DNA of 64,000 bases, from the sequence record LC727697.1; one strand, given 5' to 3'. The notes under the pieces were generated by a model. It did not search any database. It had not been told where the DNA came from and worked only from the letters and a program-made list of their open reading frames with translations. Positions within the stretch are counted from its first letter, which is position 1, and each line of letters opens with the position of its first letter. Made by a program: the position numbers and the translations under genes. Below are positions 6,519-45,170 of the stretch, piece by piece.

Positions 6519-6543
6519 GCAAATAAGATTAATTCGCGTTTGC
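6519..6543. promoter_or_regulatory. Fur-box-like operator (25-bp form)
   Basis: GCAAAT AAGATT A ATTCGC GTTTGC. Confidence 0.7.
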
Positions 6544-6557
6544 TAGTTAGCAGCCGC

Positions 6558-7042
6558 AAAAAAATCCCATCTAAGGGATCCTTTTGCCCAAAAACATTCG
6601 ATTCAGACATCTGTCTTTTAAACGAATCGAAGCGGTGTTTCGGCATTCATAATTATCATCATCATAATGTATATTTAATGCTGCGGCGGCATACTCTTCA
6701 CCTCCAGGAAGCATATAATAGTTTTAGGTTAATGATTCCTACTAGCACTAAGGCATATGCCAGTAGACCGTTTTAAGACCTGCTACAAAGCGGGGTAAAG
6801 CATAGATACATACAGTGTACCTTTGTAGCTGTCCCGCCTGTAGCAGCAAGGTCTAGCAGTGTCCAGGGGCAGGTACGTCATTGACCGATTTCCGATTTAA
6901 GGAAAGGTATGCTGCGCCTTCCACGTTACTAGACCTTGTACACCTGTTTGCCGCAGCCCGCGAACATCGCGGGCGGGCTGCTTGCGGGACGGTGTCTCCC
7001 GTTTAGTGTTGCTTACAATGCGTTATGCTGTATTGCTTTGTG
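6558..7042 (-). ncRNA. candidate structured ncRNA 1 (about 480 nt)
   Basis: Promoter 7048-7076, terminator-like hairpin 6558-6581, no long minus-strand ORF, many long helices. Confidence 0.7.
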
Positions 7043-9817: not shown

Positions 9818-9848
9818 GCAAATGCAAATAAGATTAATTAGTGTTTGC
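9818..9848. promoter_or_regulatory. Fur-box-like operator
   Basis: GCAAAT GCAAAT AAGATT A ATTAGT GTTTGC. Confidence 0.7.
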
Positions 9849-10228: not shown

Positions 10229-10282
10229 CAGTATTGATGCTGATACAAGAAACTGTAATAGTCTATATCAGCATCAATACTG
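10229..10282. repeat. perfect 17-bp inverted repeat
   Basis: CAGTATTGATGCTGATA-20-TATCAGCATCAATACTG. Confidence 0.95.
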
Positions 10283-12052: not shown

Positions 12053-12487
12053 TTACAGATCCCGGATAGCTTCGGCGTTTTTTTCAAACCACTTGACTAG
12101 CTTTTGCATAGCTTCGGCTGGTGTCTTGCCCTTGATCTTGCGGAACTTGATCACTTCCGAACGATAGGGGATAGACCACGTTAGCAGCTCAATTTCGACC
12201 GGCGAACCTTCTGGCAATACATTCCCGCGATTGTCACACAAATTCATCATAAAGCGCATGTAACCGCTCGCATTCATCAGAATGCTGTTCGGGGCTTCGG
12301 AAGCGCAACCGACATTCGCAAACGAAATTGTCATCGACGGACCAAGGTTATCGGAAACCGACGCGGCGGCGATGTAATTCGGAAAAATCTTAGCCATGGA
12401 AGTTTTGAAGTCTTCGGCGGCTTGCTTGGTGTTTTCTACGATCATTTTTGAATCTCCGGGGCTGTTAGTCATGGCTTGTCTCCCCAT
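12053..12487 (-). CDS. hypothetical protein
   Basis: ORF in GC-rich island. Confidence 0.7.
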   Translation of the reverse strand: MGRQAMTNSPGDSKMIVENTKQAAEDFKTSMAKIFPNYIAAASVSDNLGPSMTISFANVGCASEAPNSILMNASGYMRFMMNLCDNRGNVLPEGSPVEIELLTWSIPYRSEVIKFRKIKGKTPAEAMQKLVKWFEKNAEAIRDL

Positions 12488-12735
12488 TTCACTTCAAGCC
12501 ACAGGTCAACAGACTGGCGTCCTTCGGCATGCACCGCACAGTCGAAGCCGAGACTACGCAACACTTTGAGGATCGCTTCGCTGCGCCGCGAGGTGCCGAT
12601 GCCGAACCCATAGGCGCGGGTAGTGTACACGTACTTTCCTTCTGCGGCTGCTTTGGCGATGTCGTTGAGGATGGCATCGACATCGTCTTTCGCTCGCGCT
12701 ATGTCACGGGCTTGCTCAGCGGTCAGTCTGCTCAT
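12469..12735 (-). CDS. hypothetical protein (88 aa, MSRLTAEQARDIA...)
   Basis: Internal ATG at 12735 overlaps stop of 12732-13055; the longer ORF-track start is antisense/overlap noise. Confidence 0.7.
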   Translation of the reverse strand: MSRLTAEQARDIARAKDDVDAILNDIAKAAAEGKYVYTTRAYGFGIGTSRRSEAILKVLRSLGFDCAVHAEGRQSVDLWLEVKWGDKP

Positions 12736-13055
12736 TTCACTGCCTCGATACCGGCTTCTTGGAGGGCTTCTTCCTGCGCCTTGAGCATTGCTTCGTAGGC
12801 TGGGAGGCATAGACCTCCTATGTAGTTTGTATCTGGGCAGACCACGGCGTCGTAGGTATCTTCCAACCAAGACGGGCACTGCCGCGGCATCGGGACGTAA
12901 TCCTTCATCAGTGCCACACGACTGGCTTTCCAGGCCTCGTAGCGTGCCTGAACATGCGGGTTGAGGTACAAGTCGTCGACTGCATTGTACGCAAGCGGTG
13001 CCGAAGAACGAGTCCGAACCCACGATTCAAATTCTTTTTTCATGTTAGGCTCCAT
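12732..13055 (-). CDS. hypothetical protein
   Basis: EFE.W...Y....VQA.YEAW.ASR pattern typical of prophage accessory genes. Confidence 0.7.
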   Translation of the reverse strand: MEPNMKKEFESWVRTRSSAPLAYNAVDDLYLNPHVQARYEAWKASRVALMKDYVPMPRQCPSWLEDTYDAVVCPDTNYIGGLCLPAYEAMLKAQEEALQEAGIEAVK

Positions 13056-13131
13056 TAAATCAAAACGTTATGTGTTACTTCTACTATACGTACTAACAGT
13101 ATACAACGTATTAGTACGTATAGCAAACGAA

Positions 13132-13771: not shown

Positions 13772-13838
13772 GCAAATAAGATTAATTAGTATTTGCTAAT
13801 ATAGATCCAAAAAGAAAGGGAATTATAATTCCCTTTCT
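13772..13838. terminator. operator + intrinsic terminator
   Basis: GCAAAT AAGATT A ATTAGT ATTTGC then AGAAAGGGAA-TTATAA-TTCCCTTTCT. Confidence 0.8.
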
Positions 13839-14396: not shown

Positions 14397-14983
14397 TCTT
14401 TATTCCATAATGTGTTTTTGTAATGTAGCATGTTTAAATCAATTTCTCTTACATAAAACTTCTTTGTTTCGTTAGTACATATAGAATGAACATGCATATG
14501 TTCTTGTAGTTCATTTACCATACTATCATTAATACAGACAAATATATCTCCTGTTTCTAATCGAATATACTTATTGTTTGAAATATAATTAAGATTAAAC
14601 GGATTCTCGTGAATTCCAATATTAGCTGTTGCCCAGCTAACTTGAGTATTCTCTTTAATATTAAAAACATTTCCACGAGGAACTGAATCGTAAAACATTC
14701 TTATATCTCCTACTCTAAATTTAGAGCAATCAGTAATAGAAATATACGAATGTACAACAGGTGTTTTTTTATCTAGTTTGACATCATTTTCTACATATGT
14801 ATAAGAAATAATTACCTTTATATAATCACGACTATGTGATATTTCAGTATGTAGGAATGTTTTATTTCTTAGTAATTTATATGAGATATATCCTGACTCA
14901 AAAGTCTTCAGATAATTTATTTTGAAATTTTCTTCTATTAGACTAGTGTATCGATTAATAGCAGCAGTCAAAGAAAATGACAT
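14393..14983 (-). CDS. hypothetical protein
   Basis: 196-aa ORF, AGGA SD. Confidence 0.75.
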   Translation of the reverse strand: MSFSLTAAINRYTSLIEENFKINYLKTFESGYISYKLLRNKTFLHTEISHSRDYIKVIISYTYVENDVKLDKKTPVVHSYISITDCSKFRVGDIRMFYDSVPRGNVFNIKENTQVSWATANIGIHENPFNLNYISNNKYIRLETGDIFVCINDSMVNELQEHMHVHSICTNETKKFYVREIDLNMLHYKNTLWNKE

Positions 14984-15140
14984 AGTATGTTCCTAATAAT
15001 CAAAACATTGTAATGTACATTTGATTTATGCAGTGTAACACATATATCAAACTGTCAACAAGTAACAGCCATATTATGCCCTTGTATACATATATGGTTA
15101 ATACTATAGTAGATATTCACAGTAGCTAACGCTACATGTG

Positions 15141-15842
15141 AATTATTGTTTAGTTTTTATCTTCATATTCATTACGATAAAACTAAACAATAATTAATTC
15201 TTATTTGTAATTATATTGCTTTTGCTCTTGCTCTTAGCGGTAAGGGTGAAGGCCCTTAGATGCTGTGCAAAGCACAGCAGAAGCGTCCATTTCCAAGTAG
15301 GTTCAGGAAATTATATTCTCCCGTAATTACGGGAGAATATAAAACCCATATGCCAATATAGGACGAGGGCATAAGTACTCAAAACCATTTCGTAATATGG
15401 ACGAGGCGGGGACCTTTTTCCTCAGATTACATCATTCTCTCATTGTTTCCAATGAATCCCGGAACATCGATGTTATATACCTATGCTAGAAAATTTACAT
15501 CAATGCTGAAGTTGGTGTGTATATTCTTTTGTATATCCGTGTGAAATACAAGCAAGAATTACACTCTGTTTCTACCAGAGCTTCATCCTTTTATTACATA
15601 TCTAATATCGGATAAGATATATAATACGTTTCGCATAGTCCTTTGCAACATTAGACATATCCTTGTCTAACGACTATACTTCAGCACCCAAAATCATAAT
15701 TTAAATAACCCACTTTTGTATGCTTTAATCTGTCTCTAACAGAACAATACTGTGGGCACGATGGGGATAGTTTCTACTACCAATATCCAATAATGGAACA
15801 GAGCTGCTTGTGAATGGAACAAAGTAGCTGTTACGACAGCAT
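15141..15842 (-). ncRNA. candidate structured ncRNA 2 (about 600-700 nt)
   Basis: Consensus promoter upstream, no ORF of 60 aa or more, nested helices, GAAA tetraloop, terminal long hairpin. Confidence 0.7.
15311..15342. repeat. perfect 32-bp palindrome
   Basis: TTATATTCTCCCGTAATTACGGGAGAATATAA. Confidence 0.95.
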
Positions 15843-15848
15843 GAACAA

Positions 15849-15877
15849 ATTATACTAGTATACACATCAAATGTCAA
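15849..15877 (-). promoter_or_regulatory. consensus sigma70 promoter
   Basis: TTGACA-17-TATAAT. Confidence 0.9.
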
Positions 15878-15898
15878 ATACTTTGATTATGTATAATT

Positions 15899-19528: not shown

Positions 19529-19611
19529 GTTGTATACCTCTGTAGCTGATGGAAGGATTATGTTGTTTACTTACTACACTTTCGGGGCACTTACCCCTTA
19601 AGCTTGTATAC

Positions 19612-19735
19612 AGTGTAGAGCCTAGTTTGCATTGCGTCAAGCATTTTTTGTTTACTTTCTGCGTTGCTTACTATGTAGCGCTCTACACACTGCGTCTACA
19701 GTTCGCACTTTAAGGTCGTAGTAATGGAAAGTCAA
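19612..19735 (-). promoter_or_regulatory. tandem sigma70 promoters with A-tract UP elements
   Basis: TTGACG-17-TACACT (19612-19640) and TTGACT-17-TAAAGT (19707-19735), both preceded by AAAAAATGC. Confidence 0.85.
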
Positions 19736-19901
19736 GCATTTTTTAAAATATTTTTAAATTATTTTTTACCATCTTGTATACGCGCGCGAGCTATATATAG
19801 CAAGGTCAATCAGTATGGTGTAGAATTATAATTTATAAACAAATCAACTACTTATCTACTATCCATTTCCAAGTATGCTACCAATCCATATACTGGGCAG
19901 T

Positions 19902-20025
19902 GCAAATGCAAATAAGATTAATTATTATTTGCATATTCTTTTTCGTTGCAAATGCAAATACGAATTAGTCTTATTTACAATAACAAATGAAATTACAAAC
20001 GCAAATAAGAATTAGTCTTATTTGC
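19902..20025. promoter_or_regulatory. cluster of three 25-bp Fur-box-like operators
   Basis: GCAAAT AAGATT A ATTATT ATTTGC (19908); GCAAAT ACGAAT T AGTCTT ATTTAC (19954); GCAAAT AAGAAT T AGTCTT ATTTGC (20001). Confidence 0.75.
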
Positions 20026-20029
20026 AATA

Positions 20030-20113
20030 ACAAATGAAATAGAGATGAATAAGGAAATGAATAAGGAAGTGACAAATGAAATAGAGATGAATAAAGAAAT
20101 GAATAAGGAAGTG
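20030..20113 (+). repeat. 42-bp purine-rich tandem duplication
   Basis: ACAAATGAAATAGAGATGAATAA(G/A)GAAATGAATAAGGAAGTG x2. Confidence 0.9.
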
Positions 20114-20132
20114 AATAAGAGAATATCTGCTC

Positions 20133-20410
20133 AAAAAGAAAGGCAAACATAAGTCTGCCTTTCTGATATAAATGCTCCTCAGAACAGTCACGTGCTCTGT
20201 ATCTGGGCAAATTATGCTCGTCAGCACAACGGAGCGGTATATCTTGCCTAAGGAATTGTTATTTGTATAAAGCCCCTTACTCTTTATACTCAGCTAGAAT
20301 ATACAATACTAAGGAATCACTAGCATCATCCTTAGGTCTATCTGGTTATACCAGAATCGACATATCTAAACAACATAGGAGGTATTTACGTATGCAACAG
20401 CGCATAACTT
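20133..20410 (-). ncRNA. candidate structured ncRNA 3 (about 275 nt)
   Basis: Promoter TTTACA-17-TATACT (20417-20445); terminator AGAAAGGCA..TGCCTTTCT-TTTT (20133-20164); several hairpins. Confidence 0.65.
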
Positions 20411-20630
20411 GTATATAGTATATGCATATGTGTATGTAATGTAAATGTTATTTTTATTAATTTACAGATAGTTTCTGTTCTTAATCTTTTCTAAACTATC
20501 AAAAATAAAAGATTAGCCAATGCATCGACAACATGCGCGATTGCATTTTGCATATACACTCAGAACACAAAATGTAAATGCAAAATGCAAATGCGGATCC
20601 GAGTTTGTGCCTAAAATTGAATTTGGAAAC

Positions 20631-20673
20631 CGGAATTGCGATTTAGAATTCCAAAACCTAAATCGCAATTCCG
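20631..20673. repeat. perfect 16-bp inverted repeat
   Basis: CGGAATTGCGATTTAG-11-CTAAATCGCAATTCCG. Confidence 0.95.
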
Positions 20674-20686
20674 AATGGCCGAATAC

Positions 20687-21094: not shown

Positions 21095-21129
21095 GTATAC
21101 TATACCTTTTCTAGACCATTAGTTGTTTG

Positions 21130-21537
21130 TTGAGTTTGGGTAGCACTCACCTACCCCCTTCACTGCGAGATTACTAACTGAAGGTTTTGCTTTTACGTTT
21201 AATACATGGTGTAATCTAATATCTTACAGCATGTATACGGTTGCATAGAACTTTATATCATATTAAAGTATTTTAGAAAGGACTGTCTGGGATAGCAACC
21301 ATCACCTACAGCTTCCTGATAGTGCATTCCTTCTAATACACTATCCTACGAGAAAATTTCGAAGGTTCTTTGGAAGTTTTTATGCCCATTCAAATATAAT
21401 GTGTAGGCTATAATGCCTAGGAATGAGCTGGATATTTGTTCTTTACACAGCATCTTCCAACCGTATTTGCCTGTGTATCCTGTAACATCACTGTTACAGA
21501 CTTTTTAACTTACTTAACAAGTAACTGTTTAGTAAGC
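21130..21537 (-). ncRNA. candidate structured ncRNA 4 or long structured 5' leader (about 400 nt)
   Basis: Promoter TAGACA-16-TG-TAATAT (21544-21571); long-range helix, GUGA tetraloop, G-U pair valid only on minus strand. Confidence 0.6.
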
Positions 21538-21602
21538 ATGTATATATTAGCATAATGCACTTATTTGTCTATGGTTATATTGTGTGTTTAGTAGAAAGCT
21601 CA

Positions 21603-43799: not shown

Positions 43800-43889
43800 T
43801 GGCAGATACTGTAGGATTCGAACCTACGGAGCTTTTTCAAACTCACTTCCTTAGCAGGGAAGCACCTTAAGCCACTCGGTCAAGTATCT
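43800..43889 (-). tRNA. tRNA-Ser(GCT)
   Basis: Cloverleaf, long variable arm, anticodon loop CT-GCT-AA, TTCGAAT, CCA. Confidence 0.95.
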
Positions 43890-43894
43890 ATATT

Positions 43895-43984
43895 TGGCGG
43901 AGAGGGTGGGATTCGAACCCACGGGACCTTTCGATCCGCTAGTTTTCAAGACTAGTATAATAAACCAGACTCTATCACCTCTCC
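43895..43984 (-). tRNA. tRNA-Ser(TGA)
   Basis: Cloverleaf, long variable arm, CT-TGA-AA, CCA. Confidence 0.95.
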
Positions 43985-44358: not shown

Positions 44359-45170
44359 TTAAAATTCTCTTTTGTTATTTTATGCACTTATTATACGAAA
44401 TAATTATACTTTTGTCAAATGTTATTTTGTATATTTAAAAGAAATCATCATAAGAATGTACTACAAGTATATATTTTTCTTATTAAATATCCGTCGGGAT
44501 CTATTATAAAAATATTCAAATGCTTTGAATAAAAAACACCATTAAAAAAGTAAGTAGGGGATATTCGTATAATACCTTCGTTAGCATTAATAGATATCCT
44601 AAATATGTTTTCCATAAATCCACACCGTTATTATGTGTATTTATGGTTTTATTTCTATTTAGAATAGTTATTATAATAGATATATAATGGTTATTTAAAG
44701 GTAAGTCAATTTATAAAATAATAGATAAGCTAAAAATATTTGCATGCAATTAAAAAATCAGTTGTTTTATCTACAACATATATTTCTAATTGTTTTCTAT
44801 TGCTTGTCGGTTTAGTTTTTATCGAAACACATATAGATTTTGTATAAGACAACCTAGAAATGCTATATACATTTTCACGAAAAATAGACAAATCGAGTCT
44901 AAATATGCAACCTGCCATTTAATGTTGGTTCCTTAAACAGAACAATATCAATTTATATTTTTATTCTATCTGTCTAAAAACCATAAAGCATAATTTCCTA
45001 TATTAGGAAGGTATAAACATAAACAATGAGATTTTCTTACATACAATAACTCTGTTGTGTATGCCTGTATTTCCAGCACCGTTATATTAGATGGTATAAC
45101 TAATACTTCCATATTTATCCACTACACGAATCATCGAATAGATATACCAATCAATTATATTAGAATATTG

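Follow-up and report, generated by a model that had tools for sequence, protein, structure and literature searches.

A probable family of three lncRNA genes with a shared folded 5′ domain in Wroclawvirus jumbo phages

Structured ncRNAs exceeding ~500 nt are uncommon in bacteria and phages, and new biology has come from most of them. GOLLD and ROOL (PMC12286853) are phage-borne, structured, ORF-free and ~0.6–0.8 kb in length, and in these respects resemble the locus described here. For the phage PA5oct, ncRNA004 (EST35_0353) was annotated from RNA-seq as a 619-nt “putative lncRNA” (Lood et al. 2020, PMC7318152). Five PA5oct ncRNAs were counted in the 2018 preprint and four in the final paper (PMC7318152), where ncRNA001 and ncRNA002 are abundant at 1–5% of phage reads and ncRNA004 accounts for 0.02–0.08%. 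ColE1 RNA II, the T4 oriF–oriG transcripts and the HK022 put RNA also consist of a promoter followed by structured non-coding RNA, although here the likeness is an analogy of mechanism only.

Phi30-2 (LC727697.1) is a 287-kb Pseudomonas jumbo phage of the genus Wroclawvirus (family Arenbergviridae, PA5oct group), and the whole stretch of 64,000 nt analysed here is referred to as the window. A 915-nt unannotated gap (14984–15898) separates the minus-strand early genes RVBP16_0340 (PA5oct gp049) and RVBP16_0330 (gp050). We have named the putative RNA gene in this gap copy A, and its paralogs elsewhere in the genome copies B and C. The gp34–gp105 region is reported to be highly transcribed early, on the same strand as copy A (PMC7318152). 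The gap is kept in 10/10 complete Wroclawvirus genomes; in half of the records automated pipelines have placed three or four very small ORFs in it, using both strands, and in the remaining records it is blank. Proteins neighbouring the gap match no informative family, the flanking proteins have no relatives below 82% identity, and the gap itself holds no tRNA genes.

Copy A is unlike GOLLD and ROOL in that it gives no Rfam match even at E = 10, has no adjacent tRNA genes and is found in one genus only, with covariation support limited to 125 nt. It resembles PA5oct ncRNA001 and ncRNA002 as a presumed ORF-free early transcript behind a sigma-70-like promoter in the same terminal-repeat region, but it has no sequence or model similarity to either, and both of these RNAs end in canonical intrinsic terminators. 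Their equivalents in phi30-2 lie on the minus strand of the window, unannotated and without an Rfam match: 20155–20390 is 100% identical to ncRNA001, and 6575–7029 is 92% identical to ncRNA002, which is GC-rich and looks highly structured.

The promoter of copy A is a 12/12 match to the sigma-70 consensus with a predicted start near 15842, and both of its hexamers are invariant across 10 genomes. Only one other perfect TTGACA-17-TATAAT promoter exists in the 64-kb window, at 44390–44418 on the minus strand, ~400 nt upstream of two tRNA-Ser genes (43800–43984). Such a perfect promoter, followed by about 700 nt without an ORF of at least 60 aa, had been claimed in the initial annotation of this DNA, and both points are confirmed: the longest ORF in the gap has 50 aa and a TTG start that sits within the −35 hexamer, and stops crowd all six frames. 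The largest ORFs of the gap are broken by an indel or not kept between genomes, and a decayed gene or a set of small proteins was rejected on these grounds. ORFs starting in the region shared by the three paralogs reach 7, 14 and 49 aa. A candidate plus-strand promoter at 14778 was dropped because it is not conserved; the hexamers of the weaker promoter of the next gene (15073–15101) are conserved apart from one genome.

Six independent Logan assemblies all end at window position 15784, which suggested a repeat exceeding the word size of the assembler, which we take to be 31 nt. The breaks are explained by a 49–54-nt repeat with 96% identity among the three lncRNA copies, which also makes short-read mapping at the locus ambiguous. 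Two further copies of the 5′ part were found in phi30-2 at ~69.4 kb and ~239.6 kb, oriented as copy A and each within a large ORF-free gap with all frames full of stops; the two loci span 68461–69613 and 238445–239958 of the phi30-2 genome. Exactly three places per record were identified in 11/11 Wroclawvirus records, corresponding to 10 distinct genomes with PA5oct present under two accessions. Copy B (phi30-2 69477 to 68859, minus strand) is the counterpart of PA5oct ncRNA004, which is better conserved than its flanks, with 99.2% identity compared to 96.4% over the surrounding 2.9 kb. Copy C lies in ~1.2 kb of ORF-free sequence, for which the PA5oct annotation shows only tiny ORFs. A sigma-70-type promoter lies upstream of the shared region in all three copies, each time with TTGACA and a spacer of 17 nt: TTGACA-17-TAAACT (10/12) in copy B, and TTGACA-17-TATAAT (12/12) with an extended −10 TG in copy C, at 239827–239799 and ~150 nt ahead of the shared block.

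Copy A and ncRNA004 share the 125-nt domain (78–80% identity), the TTGACA with its 17-nt spacer, an ORF-free body, a 28-nt second block, a similar length (619 nt for ncRNA004, an inferred ~616 nt for copy A) and the same 5′ offset: the block begins 33 nt from the RNA-seq 5′ end of ncRNA004 and 32 nt from the predicted start of copy A. They differ in that ncRNA004 has a weaker −10 and a canonical terminator ~350 nt past its end, and sits at a strand-switch beside structural genes, whereas copy A lies in the early terminal-repeat region. Outside the 125-nt domain and the 28-nt block, the bodies of the three copies are unrelated. Our literature search found no report of copy A as an RNA gene, of copy C, of the relatedness of the three copies or of a structured domain; already known is the annotation of ncRNA004 as an lncRNA, and newly described here is a genus-restricted RNA family.

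RNAalifold analysis of the paralogs predicted eight helices with 40 pairs in the shared domain, ten of them with compensatory changes (Table 1). The covariance model (R1) scores copy A at 173.6 bits (E = 2e-38; 15815–15675, minus strand) and copies B and C at 136–153 bits (ncRNA004 at 136–139); the next best match has 21 bits, and exactly three copies are found per genome. In the model-based alignment of 15 sequences, which comprises three paralog lineages only and is fitted to the model, 98.6% of cells are paired and 11/40 pairs (31 cells) are changed on both sides. None of 500 shuffles reaches these values, and sliding the partners by 1–3 columns lowers pairing to 34–47% and leaves 0–3 pairs changed on both sides. 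Loop and junction strands are invariant, and two invariant stretches of ~55 and ~26 nt flank a segment that has diverged in sequence but conserved its pairing. At the closing helix P1, copy B has UGGC/GCCA where the other two copies have CAGC/GCUG. Homolog covariation had been named in the initial annotation as a check on its structured RNA, and at 11/40 domain pairs with compensatory change across the three paralogs, on the promoter strand, it bears the idea out.

Several domain pairs are invariant G-U, or alternate between G-U and A-U or G-C. As G-U pairs become C·A mismatches on the opposite strand, the domain folds on the minus strand only, and the functional strand is thus the promoter strand. 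When the paralogs are folded one by one, a common architecture is predicted for the minus strand of all three (−30, −25.7 and −27.2 kcal/mol), and the plus strand does not give it; the thermodynamic z-scores of the domain are modest, from −0.6 to −1.8. The sequence TGTTCCATT occurs at two window sites only, the start of the domain and its duplicate at 15813–15829; copies B and C lack the duplicate. The 9-bp long-range helix 15504–15512/15678–15686 proposed in the initial annotation does not survive: 1.55 perfect 9-bp complements are expected per shuffle, so that it is at chance level, and it is contradicted by residues 15682–15685 forming the 3′ strand of the covarying P1. A closing helix of 15780–15773 with 15113–15106, obtained by alifold over the whole length, was likewise superseded, as 15781–15766 folds locally into hairpin H2 in every paralog.

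In an alignment of ten genomes over 4.1 kb, the core of copy A (15105–15848, 744 nt) is the least variable stretch, with 2.55% variable columns compared to 4.5–16% in the flanking genes and 13% in the adjacent 121 nt of the same gap. Substitution sites amount to 2.4% of the core, and to 2.2% of second and 11% of third codon positions in four upstream genes; core substitutions are 4.5-fold rarer than those at third codon positions (Fisher p = 4e-9). A run of 158 nt is unchanged in 12 sequences. The core is under strong purifying selection. The variation that does occur was compared with a fold predicted from phi30-2 alone by moving the observed changes to random columns of the same base. Two compensatory pairs were observed against 0.03 expected (P = 0.0002), and five broken cells where 27 were expected (P = 0.0008). 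Applied to the plus strand, the test had a similar outcome, and the variation within copy A thus supports structure but does not decide the strand. Pair 15754/15711 changes from C-G to U-A in phi30-3, and pair 15277/15263 from C-G to A-U in Deifobo, with a C·U mismatch in two others; beyond the 125-nt domain, compensatory change is seen in one hairpin only. Folding z-scores are strong on both strands over 15050–15425, because perfect hairpins lie there, and modest over 15425–15800, with the minus strand consistently better.

All complementarities named in the initial annotation exist in the sequence, and the motif GCC(C)TCGTCC(T)ATAT does occur twice as stated there, at 15356–15370 and 15395–15407. 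One copy could pair with AUGGACG at 15289–15283, and the other is predicted to lie in the 13-nt loop of a hairpin. Two inverted repeats have arms of at least 12 bp, far above the 0.03 expected. The palindrome at 15311–15342 was considered as a terminator and rejected: on both strands its U-rich arm is 5′ and its A-rich arm 3′, the reverse of the genuine terminators of the phage. The hairpin at 15261–15279 has undergone repeated loop inversions, since its loop (15269–15271) is AAA or TTT and GAA or TTC among isolates, each pair being reverse complements; the loop sequence is thus free and the stem is kept.

Table 1. Features of copy A and its surroundings in phi30-2 (window coordinates). MFE and alifold denote predicted folds.
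Feature	Position	Strand	Remarks
Sigma-70 consensus promoter	15849–15877	−	−35 TTGACA 15877–15872, 17-nt spacer, −10 TATAAT 15854–15849
Predicted 5′-terminal hairpin GCUGU-CGUA-ACAGC (+3 to +16)	15827–15840	−	MFE and alifold; invariant
Partial duplicate of domain nt 1–17	15813–15829	−	Direct repeat, 21-nt spacing; copy A only
Shared 5′ domain, 125 nt (+37 to +161)	15682–15806	−	78–84% identical to copies B and C
Closing helix P1 of shared domain	15806–15803 with 15685–15682	−	
Shared-domain hairpin H1	15797–15786	−	
Shared-domain hairpin H2	15781–15766	−	
Long arm P2–P6 of shared domain	15765–15687	−	
Predicted nested stems 15677–15672/15640–15635 enclosing 15670–15664/15657–15651	15633–15679	−	MFE and alifold; invariant in 12 sequences
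Second shared block, including hairpin GCUCUG-GUAGAAA-CAGAGU	15563–15591	−	93% identity to copy B, 89% to copy C
GAAA-tetraloop hairpin	15440–15455	−	Within the 158-nt unchanged stretch (12 sequences)
Two copies of GCC(C)UCGUCC(U)AUAU	15356–15407	−	Invariant
Hairpin with 14-bp stem	15311–15342	−	Phi30-2 and Cassandra: perfect palindrome; other 10/12: 1-nt bulge
8-bp hairpin with hypervariable 3-nt loop	15261–15279	−	Pair 15277/15263 varies
A-rich single-stranded tract, seven A-R-N triplets	15215–15235	−	~15227 aligns with annotated 3′ end of ncRNA004
Weak copy of 23–25-bp palindromic operator-like motif (GCAAATAAGAWTAATT..TATTTGC)	15184–15207		
Long AU hairpin, 17-bp perfect arms	15195–15141	−	Arms 12% GC
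Second hairpin after long AU hairpin	15143–15115	−	
Weaker promoter TTAACC-17-CATAAT of next gene (gp050, 14983–14393)	15073–15101	−	9/12 match

No intrinsic terminator marks the 3′ end of copy A, as no hairpin with a U-tract was found ahead of the next gene. A weak alignment places the annotated 3′ end of ncRNA004 at the A-rich tract near 15227, which would make copy A ~616 nt long; the conserved block stops at 15105. In the initial annotation the RNA ended in a long hairpin overlapping an operator. That hairpin is present, with 17-bp arms and a weak copy of the motif, but the last ~110 nt, with the operator-like palindrome and the AT hairpins, more probably serve processing or regulation than belong to the RNA body. 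The AU hairpin is a candidate RNase III or 3′-end-forming site. Comparable perfect inverted repeats, with 13–17-bp arms and 11–24-nt loops, are found right after other gene ends (10229–10282, 13084–13123, 20541–20590 and 20631–20673); with no U-tract, they are of the same type and likewise candidates for RNA processing.

Operator-like half-sites number 18 in total compared to 5.7 expected, and the family is confined to the early region. Palindromic copies were seen at 1550, 6520, 9825, 13773, 19909, 19955 and 20002, and the sites span 1464–1572, 6520–6542, 9825–9847, 13773–13795, 15184–15207 and 19909–20024. At least the sites at 6520 and 13773 lie between a terminator and the next promoter. 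This distribution suggests that the family may be bound by a dimeric regulator of early transcription. A nut-like boxA (TGCTCTTA) with a 5-bp hairpin at 15228–15258 on the plus strand was judged coincidental, that strand not being transcribed early.

Comparison with Rfam 15 revealed no family reaching the gathering threshold in copies A, B or C, and the only matches in the window to do so are tRNAs. GOLLD, ROOL, 6S, riboswitches, ribozymes and Pseudomonas sRNAs are thus not found at Rfam threshold in the gap. The best match in the gap, RT-14, reaches 25 bits compared to a threshold of 48 (E = 0.5), mostly over the AU hairpin, and a retron or RT-14 RNA was rejected. Relatives beyond Wroclawvirus were absent from phage records, IMG/VR, JGI metagenomes and GTDB genomes; a single 19-mer match in IMG/VR lies inside an unrelated coding sequence and was taken as chance. 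Known sponge and mimic functions were also considered. An RsmA/CsrA sponge of the RsmY/RsmZ type was rejected with 11 GGA observed compared to 8.3 expected (P = 0.16), and so was a mimic of the type I-F CRISPR repeat (an RNA anti-CRISPR), for which the window contains no match within 3 mismatches to the repeat sequence used. For an Hfq/Crc sponge of the CrcZ type, with A-R-N or AANAANAA tracts, one seven-triplet A-R-N tract is present at 15235–15215. This AT-rich genome has many A-R-N runs, with 27 of at least five on the minus strand of the window, so the tract is weak evidence.

Copy A is probably one of three lncRNA genes that form a family confined to Wroclawvirus jumbo phages of Pseudomonas aeruginosa, with a shared folded 5′ domain and copy-specific bodies. 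Its own transcription is inferred from the promoter, the early transcription of gp34–gp105 (PMC7318152) and the detected paralog. Host sigma-70 RNA polymerase would start near 15842 and transcribe the minus strand early in infection, whereupon residues 15806–15682 would fold into the eight-helix domain common to the three paralogs. The remaining ~450–580 nt would be copy-specific, nearly base-for-base conserved between strains, and would contain several stable hairpins. Judged from the ncRNA004 alignment, the RNA most likely ends near 15227 (~616 nt), or alternatively by cleavage inside the long AU hairpin; the operator-like palindrome and then the weaker promoter of the next gene would follow downstream. 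Our best guess is that the shared domain is a handle for one common partner, which might be a protein of the phage or the host or else the polymerase transcribing it, and that the body carries the copy-specific function. The core claim of the initial annotation, a multi-domain structured RNA, is upheld by purifying selection, fold-respecting variation, a covarying 125-nt domain and an RNA-seq-annotated paralog. Its claim that this RNA is abundant is unproven: the RNA-seq-curated PA5oct annotation contains no ncRNA at the copy A locus, and the paralog ncRNA004 makes up only the small share of phage reads given above.

Two other explanations accept an RNA but assign it a different role, and we regard both as unlikely. 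By analogy with ColE1 RNA II and the T4 oriF/oriG transcripts, the ~600-nt RNA could be the pre-primer of a replication origin, forming an R-loop at its 3′ AT-rich stretch, and the three copies would then be three origins. Each RNA indeed borders on sequence of very high AT content (for copy A, the 12% GC hairpin arms at 15141–15195), the low level of ncRNA004 would suit a primer RNA, copy C adjoins genes for a RusA-like resolvase and a ParB-like protein, and an RNase H-like protein, gp325, has been reported in PA5oct (PMC7318152). Copies B and C also lie at divergent strand-switches near local minima of cumulative GC skew; GC skew was however rejected as an origin signal because it follows gene orientation anyway, and around copy A, within an array of co-oriented genes, the skew shows no inflection. 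Neither iterons nor DnaA boxes were seen, and known phage origin transcripts need no conserved 125-nt multi-helix 5′ domain. Similarly improbable is a cis-acting leader, in which the gap would be a long 5′ UTR and the domain would modify the polymerase or the mRNA, through stabilisation or through antitermination like that of HK022 put RNA. With no canonical terminator between promoter and next gene in copies A and C, copy A could be simply such a leader; in copies A and B the start site is closely followed by the domain, and the phage relies on the RNA polymerase of its host and has numerous terminators (PMC7318152). This would however leave the base-for-base conservation of ~500 nt of copy-specific sequence unexplained. 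In addition, the genes downstream of copies A and C are unrelated to each other, the gene following copy A has its own promoter, and ncRNA004 is a discrete 619-nt RNA after which ~1 kb holds no co-oriented gene and a canonical terminator follows.

The pattern of variation in the shared domain bears on two explanations in which RNA structure has no part. A micropeptide of ~21 aa (UUG start at 15790, DIGSRNYPHRA...) with incidental RNA structure is very improbable: 12 codons are invariant at all positions and show no synonymous change while the segment next to them diverges, and the diverged part keeps its pairing and not its residues (LLETD, PIVSG, PLETE). In each of the three paralogs the frame stays open over the shared region, and past the invariant part the residues of copies A and C are similar, but the stop of copy C is altered by a 1-nt insertion, and the peptide would lack a Shine–Dalgarno sequence and start at UUG. 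Least compatible with the G-U-dependent, single-strand-specific fold is an element acting as DNA only, such as a protein-binding platform, a recombination site or cruciforms, with the RNA having no role, and we give it hardly any credence. It would account for the operator-like palindrome and the long perfect inverted repeats of the 3′ part, for the hairpin-loop inversions, which show DNA forming hairpins, and for the variation test within copy A being equal on both strands. The helices of the domain are, however, kept through G-U pairs and wobble transitions that give C·A mismatches on the opposite strand, the common architecture folds on one strand only, and the helices are long-range (up to ~120 nt), unlike cruciforms; moreover, one paralog has been seen as RNA.

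Further features of the genome were noted alongside this locus. Large unannotated and apparently ORF-poor gaps are also present in the early region at 1115–2444, 19529–20686 and 21095–21602. A GC island (56–61%, in a genome of ~30% GC) lies at 12450–13050, where one gene matches Pfam Phage_phiTE_015 in a related contig; gene content here differs between isolates, which suggests horizontally acquired cargo. Phi30-2 also carries queE, queD, a 6-pyruvoyltetrahydropterin synthase gene and folE (87249–88121 and 143591–147113), which point to a 7-deazaguanine DNA modification pathway.

The three lncRNA genes, as we read them, could also represent a new class of large functional phage RNA, be it origin pre-primers, or RNP or self-assembling RNAs built on the 125-nt handle for host take-over; this is a speculative extension with a small but real chance of being right. 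The present analysis corrects the tiny-ORF calls made on both strands of the gap by automated annotation. Annotation to date covers one of the three copies, and their kinship went unnoticed. A model therapeutic jumbo phage would have three genes of this kind, driven by promoters that are among its strongest, and pull-downs, structure probing and knock-outs could start directly from the covariation-supported domain.
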